NCBI GenBank assembly: GCA_000320545.1
Contig: ADNK01002959.1
Span: 106,593 to 170,592, forward strand
Origin: Bigelowiella natans CCMP2755
Lineage: Eukaryota; Protista; Cercozoa
Length of the DNA: 64,000 nt
Direction: 5' to 3'
Part shown: positions 7,910-60,577 of the stretch, one piece after another
Numbering within the stretch: position 1 is the stretch's first letter
Layout: each line of letters opens with the position of its first letter
The notes under the pieces: generated by a model
The model's database searches: none
What the model saw: only the letters and a program-made list of their open reading frames with translations
Told to the model about the DNA's origin: nothing
Program-made: the position numbers and the translations under genes

Positions 7910-7992
7910 CTGTGATTTGTAGGAAACAAACAACACGGTGTTGTACACGCCGTTATCGACCTGTATCGTACCGTTAGATAAACATGACTAGA

Positions 7993-8049
7993 TGAGACAG
8001 ATCTAATGAATTAATCAAACCTTTTCAATGCTCATCCTAATGTAGCTGT
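7993..8049 (-). mobile_element. Short LINE 3'-tail copy (TA retained)
   Basis: Reverse complement acagctacattaggatgagcattgaaaagg...cattagatctgtctca matches the LINE terminus at 10050-10103. Confidence 0.8.
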
Positions 8050-8337: not shown

Positions 8338-8490
8338 TGAGACGGATGTGATGAAATGTTCAAATTTTTTCAATGGTCATACATATGTGTACACATATGC
8401 ATGTACATGTACATGCACATGTATGTGTATGAGATGATCCATGTCTTTCACGACCCCACAAGTGTTGCATGTGGCATCTGCCCATGTGTG
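8338..8490 (-). mobile_element. Inverted, internally deleted 3' fragment of the same LINE family
   Basis: 8338-8380 is the reverse complement of the LINE tail. 8431-8490 encodes (minus strand) [16 protein letters not shown], matching DATCDACGILKDMDHL in the LINE zinc knuckle. Confidence 0.8.
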
Positions 8491-8526
8491 CAGCGCACAT
8501 GCATGCATGTGCACACATGTGCACAT

Positions 8527-10103
8527 CGACGACTGGCTCAGAGATCGCACCGCCAGATTCAGATTTGGCAATGCTCTCTCTGAACACATGAATCTCAAGA
8601 GCGGCGTCCCCGAAGGATCATCTCTCAGCTGTTTCCTGTTCACAACCCATTGCGATGTTTGCGAACAAATTGACAACACAGATTTCCAAACATGCTGTGA
8701 CGACGTCACCCCCTGCAAATTGTTTTCGCCAAACCGATGGGGGAAAATGCAAGATGACATCCAGGCCGACCTGAACCAAATGACGGACTGGTGCATGAAA
8801 TGGCGGATGCGATTCAATGGGGACAAGAGTGGGCACCTCGTCATTGACAAAAGAAACAAAGCCTGCCGACACCAAACCTCCTGGAACATCTCTCTGAATC
8901 TCCAAGGCAAAATGAAAAGAGTCGACAGCGGCAGATGTCTCGGACTGATCTTCGACAACAAACTGACCTTTGAAAAACATGCTCTTGCTTCTCACCTGAG
9001 ATTGCAAAAGAAGCGAAGGTTTTTGTCAAGGTTGTGTTGTTCCAGACACCTTGTGCCGCTAAATGCCAGACTGAAATTTTGCAAATCATGGTTCCTTGCA
9101 TCCAGCAGACACGCAGCTCCAATGTGGAGATCACGAAGAAACATGCGAATGAAACAGATGGATTCCATGGAATCCCAAACCCTGAAACGTGCATTGGGAT
9201 CACCTGGATCCATCTCCAACGACGTTCCCCACGTCCTCACTGGCACGTTGCCACCCCGACATCAAACCAAAGTGCAATGTGCTGAATCATGGTTGCGCAC
9301 TGATGCATGGATCGACACAGGCAGCGGTCCTCAAATGCATGAGGGAACAAATGATTGCAGCAGTTGTGGCTTCATCATTGAAAATCGAAAAATGCCAGGT
9401 GGCACATCGTGGATTGATGTGTCCACAAACACGTGGAACAAGTGTCTTTGTTTCGTCGTCTCAAATCGATCACTGACGATTTGTTAGGTGACGAATTGCC
9501 CACAGTTTTGACGACAACAGAGGCGCTGAAAAAAGAATCAAAAAAACATCACAAGGTGATGAAATCCTGTGCTTTTGCCGAATTGCAGGAGGAATGGTCC
9601 AATGATTCATTGCGAGCTGTGCATCTCAAGAATCTTGGATTCCTTCCGTCATCTTCGATCACCGGCATCAAACTGAAACTTCCAAGTGTCGCTACATCAT
9701 GGATGCGCGCCATCTGTGGTGTCGGCAATCTTGGAAAATTCGTGTTCTCACGTGGACAATGCACAGAGACAGATGCCACGTGCGATGCATGTGGCATCCT
9801 GAAGGACATGGATCATCTCCTGCAATGTCCAACACACAGTCGAGAACAAATCAGATTGCGCAATCAAATGAGCGCAATCATGAATCGCAACGACGACACG
9901 AACCGGCTGACAAATGCTGAAAAGGACTCCAGAACTGCTGCGCGCAGTGCGCGGCAACATCGGTCGCATGAGGACGCTTTCAAATGCATGAAGCACGTGG
10001 TGGCAGAAACCAACAGATGCAACATTGGCGCTGCAGCCGCTGCATTGCACAGCCACATTGGGATGACCATTGAAAAAATTTGATTCTTCATTGCATCCGT
10101 CTC
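8527..10103 (+). mobile_element. 5'-truncated, frameshifted non-LTR retrotransposon (LINE): RT domain plus C-terminal CCHC knuckle; TpA-depleted
   Basis: RT motifs WLRDR, GVPEGSSLS (GVPQGS), CCDD (YADD position), WCMKWRMRFNGDKS, RCLGLIFDNKLTFEKH (KYLG..D.KL.F..H). Second frame 9433-10083 has CDACG...HLLQC. Ends ...catccgtctca. Confidence 0.92.
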
Positions 10104-10818
10104 ATGCATGCATGCATGGATGTTTCCTGTCTACAATTAGCATGATGGACTTTACTTCTCTCATGAACCGACCGACGCCGTAGCGTGCGTTCTACGTGGC
10201 GTTGCCTACGCCTAGACGCTGTTAGCACGACCGCACAGCTGCGTTCAACCTTGCTAGCTTTGCGTGGGCAACGTCTATGTGCATGTATGTAGCTAGCTAG
10301 AACGTACCACGTCGCCCTGTCGCCGGGCGCATTGAACAATTAAACGATAAAACGTAACTATGTAGGTAATAACGCTTGCGGCGCTGATCCCGATCTCATT
10401 GCGTACATTGTCAGGATCGAATCCTGCGCATCGCATGCATGCTCTGTCCTACCCTACTCACATCGCAATTGACAATGTGTGAACTGTGAGCAGGACTAGC
10501 ATCGCAATCGACAATAATGTGTGAACTGTGAGCAGGACTAGAGGAAGGAGTACAAGCGGTCTCAAATCGATCAGTGTACAAGTTAAGCATGTCAGCATGA
10601 CGCGGCTGCACGCTGCACAACTCCTACGTCATTCTGATGTGGCTTCTTCCTTACTGTAGCGACTGTTACTTCCTTTACATTTCAGGAGGCATATGGAGAC
10701 CATCCTGGCATGATCCATTCCTCCCTCATTGTTGCAACTCAGTCAAAAATGCATAAATTAAAGCAGCCATTCTACAGCCATCATTAGGTGCTCACATTGG
10801 GATTTTCTGTAATACAAT

Positions 10819-12166
10819 TTATACGAGGTGCGCTCCAACTGGATAACTGGAGGCACTCAGGATACCACAAATGCCACATACTGTTATTTCGGAAGGACCT
10901 CCCTTGCAGCCGAAACCGTCTTGAGGCGAGCTGTCGGTCTGACAAGATGCCTCTGCCTCGCGGAAGAGCTTAATGTAACCCTGCTCACCCCATGTAGTGC
11001 CCCAGGAGTTGCGCACAAGGTAGTAGTCGTCGCCATTCTCTGTACCATAGCCAACAAGCTGCACTGCGTGGTCAATATCACTTCCGCACTTACCCTTCAT
11101 CACACCACCACCATAAAGCTGCCAGCCAATAGTCCCAGCATCGACACTAATAGCCACAGGGCCAATGGTAGCGATCGCTTCCATGAGTGCAGTGTAGTTG
11201 TTAGTGGGGAGGTCAACTTGACCGGTCACATTTGCAACAGCCTTGATCTTGGAGGTATCACAGGTTCCAGTGCTTCCTTGATAAGGATAATCCTCCTCAG
11301 TCGTAATACCTGCTGATCCGATGTATTGGAAGGCGAGTGGCTGAGTAGAGCCTTGGCAACCGCCAGTGCCTCCACATTCCTCAGGATTTGGTGCGCAAGA
11401 CACAAGCTGCTGCTCGGAAAGGGTCATCAGTTTTCCCGTGGCAATGGCCAAGTGGGACTCCATCGTCTCGGATGAGGAAAATGCCCAACAAGCTAGCAGA
11501 AAAAGTAGAACATGTTAACACAAATCGAAGTACGTAATATATCCATACAATTATCTTTACTACAACGTATGGTGCGCTAATCTACTGAATTCTTACATCC
11601 ACATCCGCCCTGGTTCTTAACCGCGGTAACCACGCCCTTGTCCCTCCAGTCGACGCTGTCAGGCAGTGTAGCCAGAAACTCGTAATTCACAGGAGCAGCA
11701 CGAGCAACCTTGCTGTCTAAGCTCTGCAACTTAGGGTGGCTACGTTGATGGAACCCACGAGTGGAACGGCGAAACTCCTCGGGATGCAAATCAGTAAAGT
11801 CGTTAACCTATATTACAGTCAGAATCTTATCGTATCGCCTGAACGTGTATTATTCCTCATGATCTTCATGATGTACTTACGTGGAGGAAGTAAGAATGAT
11901 CCTCTTTATTGTGGCGGCGAATGATCTCCAAATGGCGTTCAAAGATGCCCTAAACAGATACGGCGGATTAGCACCTTTGAAACAAATTTCGCATTGTGGA
12001 GTAGAGGAACCTTGCGGTAGCCCATCTGTGACTCTGGATATGATTTTTTGAAGTCCACAAGATACTCATCGAAAGAGTAGGGATGTCCATTGGCAAGATC
12101 CTTATGGGAGACCCTGGGGCGTGCCTCAGCTTGGAAGCAGGAGAGGAGGAAGACAAGCGCGAACAT
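10819..12166 (-). CDS. Papain-family (C1A) cathepsin L-like cysteine protease, 4 exons
   Basis: Signal peptide; I29-like propeptide (VNDFTD); PDSVDWR; spliced QGGCG/SCWAF (catalytic Cys); LSEQQLVSC; DHAVQLVGYG (His); RNSWG (Asn); GEQGY. Confidence 0.95.
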
Positions 12167-16449: not shown

Positions 16450-16696
16450 AATGCGGCGAACTTGCTGCTTAATTGCCAAAAGGCTTGCTAGCTTGGAGCA
16501 ATTGAAATAGATCATGCAAAATGCATACCATGCGGCTCTGCTAGGTTCTGTGCCCATGTCCGAGCATTGCACAATAGGCACACTGTATATACTGTGAAAC
16601 AAACCAGTACAATTTAAGCGCTGTAGCCGCAGCTTTGCACAGCTACATTAGGATGACAATTGAACAAATTTAACTTATTCGTTACATCCGTCTCAT
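16450..16696 (+). mobile_element. LINE 3' fragment, less mutated copy (5' boundary approximate)
   Basis: 16596-16696 translates ETNQYNLSAVAAALHSYIRMTIEQI*, versus ETNRCNIGAAAAALHSHIGMTIEKI* in the 8.5-10.1 kb LINE. Same catccgtctca terminus. Confidence 0.85.
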
Positions 16697-23304: not shown

Positions 23305-23832
23305 TCATATGCACAAAATGCATTTCAATCATTGGAGAGATGTGATAGACGTCGACCTCATGACTATTGCCAGGCGTGCATCTAGATACATGCTGTCCCC
23401 TGCCTTGGTCAACCGGATCTTGATGTTTCTAATTTTTTTAGTTTCTATTGATAAACTCTGGATTTGAATCGGTGCATTTTGCCTCAAAACATCAGGAAAT
23501 TTGTTTGTTCTTGAGAAACAAAATGCTGACCCACCTTGCTAACTGTCATCGCACATCATTGCACTCATGGCACAAGATGATTCGCGCCCATGCAGTCACA
23601 TGTTACCACTTTGTGTGATGTTGTGCGTGTCGGTGAGTTCGACGTTGTTCATCAACCGGCGTGCATGATGCACTGAGCCACATGCATGGCAGCATCAGGA
23701 TCCTGTTGCGCATGCATCATGGCCCACGTTGCATTGGCCACGACGCTGGCTAGGCGGGGCGCCTTGCAGTGACGCAATGTGCACAGCGTGGCCCGCCACC
23801 ATCTGCACTGCGATGCAACACCCCCCCAGCTA

Positions 23833-25910
23833 GCCAGCACCGCTGGACCGTCGCAGCCCGTCCAGTCGTTGTTGGTCTCGGAAAAATCGAAAAAACTGTG
23901 ATTTCAGCTTCGGAAAGAAATTCTCGAGACGTGCACGTGCAAAGCTCGAATTTTTGCCCATTGAGCATTGGAATTGGTCTTCCGGATCTCAGACCCATCG
24001 AGGCCAAACCCGGTCACAAATGGGTTTCGCATGTTTGCAGAGCGCTTCAAGGGCATTTTTTGCGTGCAATCCGTCCGCAACCGTCAAAAAACACTTTCTG
24101 AATCGGCGCAATGTCGAAAAAATTCAAAAATTCAAAACCTCAGCTCAAAAACCTCGATTTTTGACCCCTCACTGCACATGGCGCTGCGATGCATGGCGCC
24201 ACGATGCAGCTGCGTCCGCTCAAGTGCGACAAGACACACAAGGCGTGCCAACGGAGCTGCACGTGCGAGCACGCGTGTCGGACGCGCCAGCACGACACTC
24301 CACGTGGGACGACACGGCACAATGAAAAAATCTCCGCGCAGAAGTTTCTCAGAAAGTTCGCACGTGGCGACATGACAAAAGTGAAAAGCTGACAGCTTTT
24401 CACTCAAGTCGCAATTGCAACAATTCAGACACATCTCGACAGAACTCAAAAGTCCAAGTGACACATTGAGATCAGAACTCAACTGCACAAGCAAGTGACC
24501 AAGCACACTCAGAACTCAAACGACCAAGTGACATCAGAACTCAAACGTTCAAGTGACAAAGTGACTCAAGAACCAAGCAACAATGCAACTCGACGACTCG
24601 TGCGACTTCAGTTCTCAACACGAGACCACATTGCACCACGCCCAACGCTGCAACAATCGACAGCTGCACCCGATGCAGAACGAATCGGTTGCATGCGAGG
24701 GCGCACGTTGCTGCAACAATCGACAGCTGCACGTGATGCAGAACGAATCGGTTGCATGCAACAGTCCGTGTGCGTCTCAACTTCAACCCTGCGACACGCG
24801 TGCTTCTGCACACGTGCGCAACACCTCAGGTCCACCACCGCGGCACGCTGACCGATCAGCGTCACCCATTCCGAATCACGCAGCTTGCCTTGACGAAGAG
24901 TTCAAGGACAACAGCCCGGCTGCGGCCGTTCTGCACGCGAATGGTTTCAATGCCGCGTCGCATCATCGCACCGCGCCTGCTGCCATGCAGGCTGAGCAAG
25001 TTCAGACAATCAACAAGGACGTTGACAGCGTGCTGACTCCCACGCAAGCGATGAGTGCACAAACCGAAGGCGCGATGTCACGACGTGCATTGCGGAGAAA
25101 GTTCTCATGATTTTGGTCAGAGGTGCAGCCGACGCGCGTGTGCAATGCGAGCAAGTGAGGACGTGTCCGTTTGCAATGGCACAATGGAACTGGCTTCGTG
25201 GACAGCCGGAAGCGCAATGCTCTGTGTGTCAAAGTTGATCGAGATGTGACGGTTGAAACTTTGAAATTGGGGCATCACTGCCACGTTCAGACGTGCACGC
25301 ACAGCCACGACAGGACACACACGACGTGTCGTGAGTGCAGAGGGGTTTTGACGCATTGGAGACACTGCGCAGCTGGTTTTCGGTCAAAGAGATTGGTCGT
25401 GTGCAAACGCGCGCGCAGAACTTTGGTTCAAAACGCCGAGGCGTGGCGCGCACAAGCGGCGCGTGGTGCGGGGCAGCGCGATCGAGCAGAAGTCGCACCT
25501 CGCGGGGGGGGGGGGGGAATGCGAATGAAAAACATTCAACTGTGCCAAAAGTTTCCACAGGACCCCTGCTTGACATCTGAATCGAGTTTGCGCGAAAAAA
25601 ATGCGTCATTTTTTTTTTTTTCAATTTTCGCAAAGTTGTGACCGGTTTGGCCTGGATGTGGACTGCATTGTCTTGTGCACAAACTTCTTTTCAATTTTTG
25701 GGGTCTTGAAATTTGCTGTGGTTTCACTGTGCACGAGACACCCGCATCTGTGTTCGGACATTGGGAACACGGGGAGCCAGGCAGGCTGGCAGGGTTCCAT
25801 CCGAAAGATCGATTCCAAATGACGGGCAAAATTTCGAACTTTGGTGAGTCTCAAGGCTTTCCACCTAGCTAGCTTTGGTCATTTGAAAATCGAGATTTTT
25901 CGAGTTTTTG
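23833..25910. mobile_element. TpA-free repeat element with long imperfect inverted ends; probably a non-autonomous DNA transposon
   Basis: Left caaagctcgaatttttgccc..ggaattggtcttccggat..aggccaaacccggtcacaa matches reverse complements at ~25637-25840. Interior recurs at ~50 kb. No recognisable transposase. Confidence 0.65.
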
Positions 25911-26298
25911 GGTGCCCACGTTGATTTTTGTGCAGTTTGTCAAAAATGAAAACATGCAGGGCATCGCAGTGCTGTGTGCACATCAGCACGCACATCTGAG
26001 CTTTCGAACTGACATGCGCGAGCGTGCAGACTGCTGTTGCCGGAGGTCAACACGTCACCACCACCGCGTGCAGGCAGCAAAGTTTTCACAACCGCGCCAC
26101 GCGATCTAAACAATGATATTTATGGAAGCATGTCATCGCTAAATCTTCACAACGTAATCACTTTCATAATTTGTTTTAAAATCATTTAACACACAAATAA
26201 AAACTACATCCGACTCATATCTCGGTACACCTGTCCCAAGAAACTGTACTGAGCATTTTTGTAAACTATACAACTACGTTTTGAGCATATGTACACAG

Positions 26299-30099: not shown

Positions 30100-30767
30100 G
30101 ACGCTCTGCGCTGCATCCACAATGATTGTGTGCCATCAAAGCAGCAACCACAAAGGCTGCTGTATCGTAGTCGCTGCATTGCACAGCTACATTGGGATGG
30201 CCATCATCAAATTTGATTGATTGATTGCATCCATCTCACAGACCAAGTGCGCGTGAAGGCAAGATTGCATGCCGCTGCATTCACCACGGTGTGGAAGGAA
30301 CATCATGCCATCAAAAACTACTTTGACACACTGTTGAAAATAGGACCGCCAAACGGGTGTGCGTGTGTAGCTACAGGATGCCGGTCCTGACTGTCATGCT
30401 GTTTCTCCTTACCATCCAGACAATCTTGGCACGGTGGTCCTCATGGTGGAAAGCAAGTCTAGAAGTCGTGCACCGTGCAGCTGCTTAGGCGCAACAACAT
30501 GATCACAGAAGTGCTGCGGTGAAATAAACAGCATTTTCTGACTGACACTTCCGCCACACCAGTTAACCGGGTGGAAAACGTGCACGATGCTACGTGGACA
30601 TGCACATTGCTGTTCTGATTCATATCACATGTACATGCAGAGGGTAGCAACCGAAGTTTCTGGTCGATGAGTTCATTTAAAGACAACTGCACTTTCAATT
30701 ACGATATTGAACAGCTACATCAGGATGACCATTGAAAAGATTTAATCAACTCATTACATCCGTCTCA
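30100..30767 (+). mobile_element. Two decayed LINE 3' remnants (tails at 30183-30238 and 30711-30767)
   Basis: acagctacattgggatggcc...catccatctca and acagctacatcaggatgaccattgaaaag...catccgtctca. Confidence 0.75.
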
Positions 30768-49768: not shown

Positions 49769-49964
49769 GGATTAGCTTAGAGTACGTACAGTGTAACAGT
49801 GACCGCGTTATGTGCACGCAGGCTGGTAGACATATTTTTACTAACATGACGGTCCTGTCACATTGGGCAATTATTGCAAGTCACGATGCACTACTAGACA
49901 CACGCACAGCACAACACAGACATTGCATTCATGTATGCTACTCTAGTACTGCTGGTCGCGCGTG

Positions 49965-50880
49965 TCGCGCCTTCGGTTTGTGCACTCATCACTTGCGTGG
50001 GAGTTGGCATGCTGTCAACGTCCTTGTTGATTGTCTGAACTTGCTTTGCCTGCATGGCAGCAGGCGCGGTGCGATGATGCGACGCGGCATTGAAACCATT
50101 CGCATGCAGAACGGCCGCAGCCGGGCTGTTGTCCTTGAACTCTTCGTCAAGGCAAGCTGCGTGCTTCGGAATGGGTGACGCTGATCGGTCAGCGTGCCGC
50201 GGTGGTGGATCTGAGGTGCTGCGCACGTGTGCAGAAGCACGCGTGTCGCAGGGTTGAAGTTGAGACGCACACGGACTGTTGCATGCAACCGATTCGTTCT
50301 GCATCACGTGCAGCTGTCGATTGTTGCAGCAATGTGCGCCCTCGCATGCAACCGATTCGTTCTGCATCGAGTGCAGCTGTCGATTGTTGCAGCATTGGGC
50401 GTGGTGCAATGTGGTCTCGTGTTGAGAACTGAAGTCGCATGAGTCGTTGAGTTGCATTGTTGTTTGGTCCTTGAGTTGCTTTGTCACTTGAACGTTTGAG
50501 TTCTGATGTCACTTGGTCGTTTGAGTTCTGAGTGCGCTTGGTTGCTTGCTTGTGCAGTTGAGTTCTGATCTCAATGTGTCACTTGGACTTTTGAGTTCTC
50601 ATGAGTTGTGTCTGAATCGTTGTTGCAGGTGCGACGACGCATGGCTTTTCACTTTGCCATGTCGCGATGTGGCTTTTCACGCTGCCGTGTCGCGATGCGC
50701 GAAACTCCTGAGAGACTTCCGCAAAGTGAGTGAGCTTTTCACTTTGCCACATCGCGACACGCTGAGCGCCACTTGGCCGTGTCCAACGTGTGCACTTTTG
50801 CACGCGGCCTTGTCGGGCCAGCACAGGCCAACAGGGGGCTCGTCGTGGTCGGGCGGCAAACTGCATCGTGGCGCCGTGCT
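49965..50880 (-). mobile_element. Second, inverted partial copy of the 24-25 kb element interior; TpA-free
   Basis: Near-identical to 24410-25075 (ORF-track translations nearly match), with patchier similarity back to ~24185. Confidence 0.9.
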
Positions 50881-51771
50881 GGCGTGCGCCACACGCGCGC
50901 ATCGCAACAAACAACAGCGCGCACAATGAAAAGCGCTGTTGTGTGCCAATGTGAGCTCAATGGTTTGGCACGGCTAGATGGGGTACACATCGCACAATGA
51001 CTGTTCACAAGGCTCGTCTCTAGCTACGTGTCAATTTATTTGGCATGTGTCGATCGGTGCGATGCAGCAACCTTGTAGTTGCTAGTGACATGTTACATGT
51101 GCACGCATGGCATGTGCGTAGCTGTGCGTCGTGCGCACGCATCATGCAGTTGATCGATGTGTGCTTGCGTAGCTGCAGGCGTGCACTGGTGCAGTTTGCA
51201 CTGAGTCCAATGTAAAGACCGACGCTACGTGTACTACATACGAGAAGATCGCATGCACAATACAACTATGCGATCAAGGTTATGCAATGCCAGTCGCAAA
51301 GTCAATGACATTTGAATAATAAATTATGTATGTTGAATAAAGTCTCTATCTGCGTTTGTTTATATGTATGAAAAGGATATTGAGAGACAGCGAGCGGAAG
51401 CTAGCAGACAAAGCAAGTAATCCTATGTGAGGCATAATTTTGCTAGCCTCATATGAAGTCATAATTGTGCGTGCCTATACTTATTCCCACGTGTTATACA
51501 AGTATGTTAGCATACTGATGATGATGATGTTTGATAATTCAAAAATATACTTGCCCTGTTGACGGTAACATCAATATAAAATTGCTGAGTCCTTTCGACG
51601 TGACATGTTATCACGTTAGAAAGTCAGTATTCATTCTCAAGTTGTTCGATATTTTAGCGGTTTGTCCTTTTGTATTCATTTCATTTAGGAACAGATTTCC
51701 GTGACTCATCACCAGAGGGGAGGTATGCCGTCGGAACAGAAGCACATGCATACCCATGATATTCGTCATCT

Positions 51772-59471: not shown

Positions 59472-60559
59472 CGTCATCAAAACGCATCGAAAATGAATCA
59501 AATTTTGGCAAGCAAAAGATCGGACAGGTCATCACTTGCACGATCATGGCCTGATTGCGCGCACTTGCGCACATTGCAATGATCAGCGCAGTTCACAATT
59601 GTGCAGCCATTCACCCGACTATTTTGGCAACCAACTGCAACATGGAGGCGCGCAAGCCACAGGAAAAACCTCTCCATGTGATGTCGCACCGGAAGCATTC
59701 CTGGATGTGGGTTGGGGTCAGGATTCTGTTCCGGACCGGGGTCGAAGTGACAGTGCGCGCACTTGCGCACAATGCAATGATCAGCGCAGTTCACAATTGT
59801 GCAGCCATTCACCCGACTGTTTTGGCAACCAACTGCAACATGGAGGCGTGCAAACCAGAAAAAAAACTTTTCCCTGTGATGTCGCACGAGATCACTCACG
59901 TGTTCAGGTTCTGTTCTGGACCACGGTGTGCGTCAGGGCAAGGAATTCGGGGCAGGGTTGGGGTCAGGGATTCGGGTCAGGGTCAGGGGTTGGGGTCAGG
60001 GTTGCACATCTTGCCCAAACGTGCAACATCGACACAAAAAGTGAGCCATCTCAAAAACTGGATGGTGTTTTTTGACAATTTTTTGCTCAACGTGCAGCTG
60101 TCATTGCGCACGACTTCAATTTGGCTCAATTGAATTTGATCGTTTGTGGAAATTCTCAATGTGCGGCACGTGGAAACACACAAAATTTCGACATTTTGCT
60201 GCACGTGACCACGCACCAAACGGTCACGCGAAGCAAAGTGCAGACGTTTCGACACTCCTGGACTCGTTTGACCAGTGCTTTCAGCAATCTTCATCACTTT
60301 TTGCTGTGCATGCGCAATTCTGAGCATTTGTGCCAATGGGAAAGTTGTTTTTGATTTTTTTTGAAAAAGTGAAAACTCTGATTTCCCAACTTTGCCAAGT
60401 TTTCAAAGTGCAAAAACTGAGGTGTCTCCTCGACATTTTGTGTTCAAGCCTGACCACTCATTGTGCTGCACGTCAGATGGCTTTCAATCAACAGGTCAGA
60501 GGCCTGTTTCCTGCAGCTCCTGCTGTGCTTGAGCTGGTCAGAACCAAAGTGCGTGAGGG
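59472..60559. repeat. TpA-free repeat block with a ~135-bp direct duplication and degenerate telomere-like hexamers
   Basis: 59555-59690 matches 59755-59890. TCAGGG/TTGGGG units at 59712-59722 and 59933-60003. One TA seen in ~1.09 kb. Confidence 0.8.
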
Positions 60560-60577
60560 TTAGGGTTAGGGTTAGGG
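60560..60577 (+). repeat. Interstitial telomeric repeat (TTAGGG)3
   Basis: gagggTTAGGGTTAGGGTTAGGGggg. Confidence 0.85.

Follow-up and report, generated by a model that had tools for sequence, protein, structure and literature searches.

LINE copy and its surroundings

The window (the whole 64-kb stretch of DNA of the marine alga Bigelowiella natans that was analysed) contains a copy of a non-LTR retrotransposon (LINE) that has lost nearly all of its TpA dinucleotides. The features at and around this copy are as follows.

8430..8524, no strand assigned: TpA-free 5' flank (97 bp), comprising an inverted LINE-related fragment (8431-8488) and CA/TG-rich simple sequence
8525..10105, forward strand: 5'-truncated LINE copy with the 3' half of ORF2 (part of the reverse transcriptase, RT, and the C-terminal zinc knuckle) and a short 3' tail
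8693..8704, forward strand: catalytic motif of the RT, YCDD in the intact family but CCDD in this copy through TAC>TGC
9060..9694: span of the three surviving TpA, at 9060 (CTAA), 9485 (TTAG), and 9693 (CTAC), each preceded by C or followed by G
9433..10083, forward strand: second frame, the part of ORF2 that follows a deletion of 1 nt near 9440, ending in TGA here and in TAA in some sister copies
10106..10131, forward strand: TpA-free 3' flank (26 bp), an (ATGC)n run that is (AT)n in some sister copies
10819..11463, reverse strand: last exon of a host gene for a papain-family protease
16596..16696, forward strand: short (50-100 bp), old LINE 3'-tail fragment with TpA retained, as also at 7992-8049 and 30706-30767

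Three TpA were observed between 8432 and 10130 (1,699 bp), where 110.5 were expected from base composition (observed/expected ratio, O/E, of 0.03; Poisson p of ~2e-43, or ~3e-20 with the expectation halved), at the same positions that an earlier note, made from the letters alone, had counted by eye. TG and CA were both raised (O/E of 1.93 and 1.50, respectively), and CG was near normal (O/E of 0.81). The TpA O/E across the remainder of the window was ~0.86, and the TpA content of the protease exon, which showed 214/214 identity to JGI Bigna1/50637 of B. natans, was ordinary.

The two LINE frames of the note (348 and 216 aa) were both present and without tyrosine, and they are a single ORF2 split by the 1-nt deletion near 9440. 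When compared with the family, the window copy was altered at 42 of 45 TpA sites (22 TG, 17 CA, one CG, and two other changes), and the 12 Tyr codons that intact copies have over this span had all become CAY (five) or TGY (seven), which is the codon change that the note had deduced. The amino acid was altered at 30 codons with TA sites, and no stop arose. Most of the proposed tyrosine losses were confirmed, as LFITYY, FYKS, and YAAPIW of the intact copies correspond to LFTTHC, FCKS, and HAAPMW in the window copy. The RT active site was wrecked as proposed, with the catalytic YCDD changed to CCDD. The window copy itself scored only 15 bits as an RT; sister copies passed the RVT_1 cut-off. The suggested YADD ancestor of CCDD was correct for the first Cys (TAC>TGC) and incorrect for the second, which is a family trait; the second Cys was dropped as evidence of conversion, being present in the intact copies. 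RCLG, regarded earlier as a scar of KYLG, is already found in intact copies (KCLG in a wild relative) and was likewise dropped as evidence.

The CA/TG-rich simple sequence in the 5' flank would represent a converted TA-type microsatellite. Five short LINE 3'-tail copies were observed in the window (7992-8049, 8338-8388, 16596-16696, 30167-30238, and 30706-30767), mostly adjoining AT-rich simple sequence; they may belong to a SINE-like family or be copies with extreme truncation at the 5' end.

Intact and converted copies of the family

The family was surveyed by a DNA search of the genome that gave 1,101 candidate places, of which 40 were scored; the places were ranked by likeness to the converted query, and the proportions of converted copies are hence not genome-wide. 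The family has at least 40 genome copies, with varied 5' ends and a common 3' end. Conversion was nearly all-or-none for each of the 30 copies fetched, which were bimodal: 16 near-identical copies held 38-46 TpA over the window span (24 in two shorter copies among them), and 14 held 3-11. Intact copies are therefore not equally TA-free. Many of the TpA-rich copies lie within a 1179-aa open frame scoring above the RVT_1 cut-off. The intact ORF2, read from about its 46th codon onward, encodes an endonuclease, an RT (YCDD), and a C-terminal zinc knuckle (CxxC..H..C); the 1133 aa read contain 36 Tyr. Its closest relatives carry PF14529 and PF00078. The element is an algal LINE and not a virus.

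Among other RT elements, all eight fetched loci included TpA-free stretches. Another, very abundant RT family occupies ~110 genome places with 1659-aa open frames and identical scores; judged from these frames and scores, it is apparently recent and unconverted.

The majority sequence of the near-identical copies was used as the reference for counting. Copies differed at a single reference TpA site, some having TG there and others CA, and the outcomes of converted copies compared pairwise mostly agreed at 0.5-0.7. Thus, TA was the ancestral state, and conversion occurred after insertion and largely independently in each copy; the two-way outcomes also exclude RIP acting in the opposite direction. 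Pooling of 13 converted copies gave 438 TG, 327 CA, and 11 CG double products (11 of 776 conversions), in which the excess of sense-strand TG was slight (p = 0.08 with sites as the unit). Neighbouring sites had like outcomes in 388 of 752 cases compared with 385 after shuffling, and the outcomes were random at each distance tested. This interleaving of TG and CA indicates that no processive, strand-coordinated tract was formed. At TATA sites in the LINE family, TGCA (23) was seen more often than CATG (11), and the central ApT may be favoured, although these numbers are small.

The change was nearly confined to TpA. In a young converted copy (L003), 60 of 60 TA were changed, compared with 0/196 for AA, 0/155 for GA, and 1/164 for CA (1/515 for other A). 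In the 3' part of another young copy (L006), 35 of 38 TA and none of 368 other A were changed. The two copies together gave 0/338 for AA, 0/265 for GA, and 1/883 for all other A contexts. A host process that converts TpA to TpG or CpA on both strands to near saturation, as proposed earlier, is supported. As TA is palindromic, A>G is indistinguishable from T>C. The direction, T:A>C:G and not C:G>T:A, is opposite to that of fungal RIP, as had been noted.

Extent and sequence context of conversion

L003 and L006 carried one or two private non-TA differences each, and the unconverted copies carried 0-2; with background changes so alike, age does not decide which copies are converted. Tract edges were sharp: the first non-CTAG TpA was found 1-62 bp beyond the 3' end of the element and mostly 3-116 bp beyond the 5' end (405 bp in one nested case), and the last 80 bp of the element often retained TpA. 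Converted tracts coincided with repeats.

A half-converted copy, young and nearly full-length (L006/L052; G000:C1193:60838-64276), showed a conversion front graded over ORF2 positions 1300-2000. Its first 64 TpA were intact, and conversion rose toward the 3' part (0/29, 0/17, 0/18, 6/20, 16/24, 16/18, and 14/14 converted TpA per 400 bp). This pattern can be read as a 3'-to-5' gradient, the alternatives being an assembly mosaic or a recombinant.

Three further TpA-free tracts of 0.9-2 kb were found in the window (23831-25866, 49947-50975, and 59620-60561), within or coinciding with the following features.

23604..26107, no strand assigned: second converted tract, in which repeats of two families are nested and one family has inverted-repeat arms; the inner surviving TpA are all CTAG
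49947..50975, reverse strand: third converted tract, a copy of 24408-25075 at 95% identity
59470..60561, no strand assigned: fourth converted tract, a 198-bp duplication and telomere-like hexamers (TCAGGG/TTGGGG), adjoined by intact TTAGGG at 60560-60575

The repeat at 23996-25900 and 49947-50975 looks non-coding and has inverted-repeat arms and an inserted second family; each of these families has at least 15-30 genome relatives. Of the interstitial telomere-like repeats (59700-60575), those inside the tract have TCAGGG or TTGGGG in place of TTAGGG, and those just outside it are unchanged.

The context of surviving TpA was counted in 32 kb of TpA-poor tracts outside the LINE family, relative to the density outside the tracts. 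Retention was 0.52 for CTAG, 0.03-0.09 for TpA with one or two G/C flanks, and mostly 0.01 for A/T-flanked TpA (0.04 for TTAA). CTAA yielded 41 TG and 37 CA, which ruled out a single-flank rule whereby one strand would be blocked by a C on the 5' side or a G on the 3' side. Since neither CTAA nor TTAG showed strand skew, the sparing of CTAG requires both flanks, which points to duplex reading or palindrome protection.

Stray conversions in young copies (26 events, several common to copies) all lay past position 2200, with 0 in 1,610 before it. The final 700 bp of intact copies was already without TpA except for five CTA/TAG sites, and in young copies two positions there were TG in some and CA in others. 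The LINE stop codon likewise varied among TAA, TGA, and CAA-derived forms. We infer that partly converted elements kept being copied while selection preserved TpA in the RT core, the alternative being gene conversion between copies.

A sister LINE family (75% aa identity) was found in six marine metagenome contigs, and its cluster holds a B. natans gene model. These contigs (L063 and L066-L070) carry full-length ORF1 and ORF2 with TA/TG and TA/CA polymorphisms. Of 18 variable positions in the sister LINE, 10 were TA/TG or TA/CA and clustered, while TpA makes up 8.4% of sites (p = 4e-7), and its 3' part was TpA-poor too. Judged from these sequences and the presumed host of the marine contigs, the process seems to be active in nature and not a culture effect. 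LINE relatives at a greater distance (55% and 39% aa identity) had no TpA-free part. A 26-kb locus of Amorphochlora amoebiformis (L061) showed no TpA-free tract and, having no recognised element, is uninformative; its introns are extremely (TA)n-rich, with TpA O/E of up to 1.9.

Relation to reported TpA hypermutation and candidate mechanisms

The earlier note knew of no description of such a system; TpA hypermutation in the same species had, however, been reported by Mettrop et al. (bioRxiv 10.64898/2026.01.13.699255). According to the main text of this preprint, 231 of 302 nuclear single-base mutations in mutation-accumulation lines of B. natans fell in two integrated viral regions, nearly all of them TpA>TpG/CpA, at ~1000 times the background rate and in some lines only. 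The main target was a single-copy 186-kb viral insert that mutated during clonal culture, and de novo mutations were confirmed by Sanger sequencing. RT, endonuclease-RT, and DDE domains were enriched in low-TpA coding sequences, and "potentially transposable elements" were suspected as targets. The process was likened to RIP, and an ADAT2 homologue was proposed (candidate Bn78255).

The species, the change, its presence on both strands, and its localisation are the same in that system as described and in our tract, where neighbouring DNA is normal and the change lies on foreign-derived DNA. The window LINE is a further target of this hypermutation, and it is almost certain that the tract is a B. 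natans LINE copy hit after insertion by the hypermutator of Mettrop et al. In the preprint's main text, transposon targets were inferred from composition, whereas copies were compared directly here; all-or-none conversion, edges, the gradient, CTAG sparing, and wild samples, all reported here, do not appear in that main text. A conversion rate of ~1.1e-5 per TpA per generation was computed from the counts of Mettrop et al. At this rate, 90% conversion would take ~2e5 generations, during which 0.2 background changes would arise in 3.1 kb, and such quick saturation of a switched-on copy fits the bimodal family.

Each TpA undergoes conversion a single time, on one strand or the other and regardless of neighbouring sites, and nearly none remain in the end, with CTAG resisting. 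The element is disabled by missense changes, including that of the RT catalytic Tyr, and no premature stop was found. In the mechanism that we propose, the process would be turned on copy by copy in a domain usually ending ~100 bp or less from the element ends, and conversion could spread as a gradient from the 3' part toward the 5' part, reaching saturation in ~2e5 generations. A TadA/ADAT-fold deaminase would make inosine from the A of 5'-TA in DNA, with G fixed by replication, and would be recruited by the chromatin state of foreign or silent DNA and not by homology pairing.

For the chemistry, a chromatin-recruited deamination of this kind at 5'-TA is the reading that we would favour, with some reservation. 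A family search, which gave places only, found TadA-like deaminase (MafB19-deam) matches at six genome places. The engineered TadA8e adenine base editor produces genome-wide off-target A>G/T>C changes in DNA with TA preferred (PMC13225742), resembling the present change and differing in being artificial and of looser context. Given this spectrum and the six TadA-like places, a TadA-fold deaminase is the best guess. Against the particular model of the preprint, the amphioxus ADAT2 on which its candidate is based, a TadA-fold enzyme able to deaminate A in DNA, prefers GAA and also attacks C at TCG (PMC10354150), neither of which was seen in the B. natans LINE copies (GA, 0/265). APOBEC3 and ADAR hyperediting is similarly a defence by deamination of selfish nucleic acid; it is single-stranded, strand-coordinated, and directed at cDNA or RNA, whereas the B. 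natans process targets DNA resident in the chromosome and chooses strands at random. The sparing of CTAG on both flanks is not simply predicted by a single-strand enzyme.

This sparing, which suggests duplex reading, suits the strongest competitor. In that model, with the targeting unchanged, an enzyme would mark either base of TpA in duplex DNA for silencing (the T by oxidation or the A by modification), and mutation would follow as a by-product when the mark miscodes or decays, without a dedicated mutator. The decay of 5mCpG is likewise symmetric, non-processive, domain-wide, and dinucleotide-specific, and the nearly absolute dinucleotide specificity seen here would be explained in the same way. 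However, Tet_JBP, MT-A70, and N6_N4_Mtase matches were absent from the genome (weak negatives in an intron-rich genome, two of them without a positive control), and the rate given in the preprint, 1000-fold above background, is far beyond passive decay. We consider the marking explanation unlikely but worth retaining. An intron-free, full-length cytosine methyltransferase domain (262 bits) was observed in a 649-aa frame of bacterial- or viral-looking layout (G000:C1391:110667-111599); it might bear on CTAG sparing.

The earlier note had proposed that repeated DNA is recognised as such. In RIP-like homology sensing, duplicates would be recognised by pairing and both copies mutated. The coincidence of converted tracts with repeats, mostly ending within ~100 bp of the element ends, the escape of 50-100 bp fragments, and the earlier conversion of the 3' part, which has the most copies, would be expected from such sensing. 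The main target in the preprint was nevertheless single-copy DNA mutating in clonal culture, so that repetition is not necessary, and 16 copies of >99% identity were largely spared, with identities above 99.5% among the spared copies, so that it is not sufficient. The ~110 same-scoring places of the abundant RT family, with their long open frames, also look unconverted. Homology sensing is thus improbable, and the targeting would be better explained by a chromatin state that foreign or silent DNA takes on locus by locus. Fungal RIP (RID/DIM-2) shares dinucleotide-specific, two-strand transitions that disable transposons and end near repeat ends; it differs in changing C to T (CpA>TpA), needing duplicated DNA and a sexual cycle, and creating stops, whereas the B. 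natans process spares identical duplicates, reaches single-copy DNA, and yields no stops. A single RdRP gene was found, and no Piwi or PAZ match was obtained in an insensitive, exon-wise search of the genome; such searches being weak, small RNAs may still guide the targeting.

Error-prone repair synthesis by a Y-family polymerase, also suggested earlier as a Pol-eta-like patch, would account for the context in part, as Pol eta favours A>G errors at TA above other contexts. Where TA was 92-100% converted, however, AA was never changed (0/338), the remaining A contexts gave 1/545, and strand-coordinated runs were absent (388/752 against 385 shuffled), which leaves this explanation very improbable. 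ADAR prefers a 5' U, and editing of LINE RNA ahead of reverse transcription could give the slight sense-strand TG excess; we nevertheless give it hardly any credence, because within each copy TG and CA are randomly interleaved, conversion also affects flanks, telomere-like repeats, and a non-RT repeat, a single A_deamin gene was found, and the change arose in chromosomal DNA according to the preprint. The TA-poor last 700 bp of intact copies and of the wild relative would suit a composition intrinsic to the element, RIP of opposite polarity (CpA>TpA) acting on TA-rich copies, or an assembly artefact. Such explanations are equally negligible, since the conserved Tyr and long open ORFs belong to the TA-rich copies, TG and CA alternate at single sites, wild assemblies carry the same polymorphism, and the preprint describes Sanger-validated de novo mutations.

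To our knowledge, no natural TA-specific DNA adenine deaminase has been established. Our literature search for other systems changing A to G at TpA returned RIP papers only, and a search for 6mA, 5mC, or Argonaute in Bigelowiella found none. The broadest reading is put forward tentatively, as a doubtful proposition taken as a whole: B. natans would possess, as a natural enzyme, a DNA adenine deaminase specific for TA (or else a marking enzyme), which would read the duplex and skip CTAG. It would be turned on locus by locus as a chromatin state spreads, with neither homology pairing nor Argonaute involved. It would work in wild ocean populations and drive a ratchet that strips active LINEs of TpA from the 3' end wherever the protein tolerates it.

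Priority for the phenomenon of TpA hypermutation belongs to the 2026 preprint (bioRxiv 10.64898/2026.01.13.699255). The LINE family turns its tentative "potentially transposable elements" into a copy-by-copy record and adds constraints on the mechanism, namely all-or-none copies of equal age, edges within ~100 bp, and the presence of the signature in wild material. The CTAG context rule has to be matched by any enzyme put forward, and the half-converted copy on contig C1193 is the best place to seek an intermediate. The process represents a eukaryotic genome defence running in the opposite direction to RIP, and a natural TA-specific DNA adenine mutator would be of interest for research on genome evolution and base editing.
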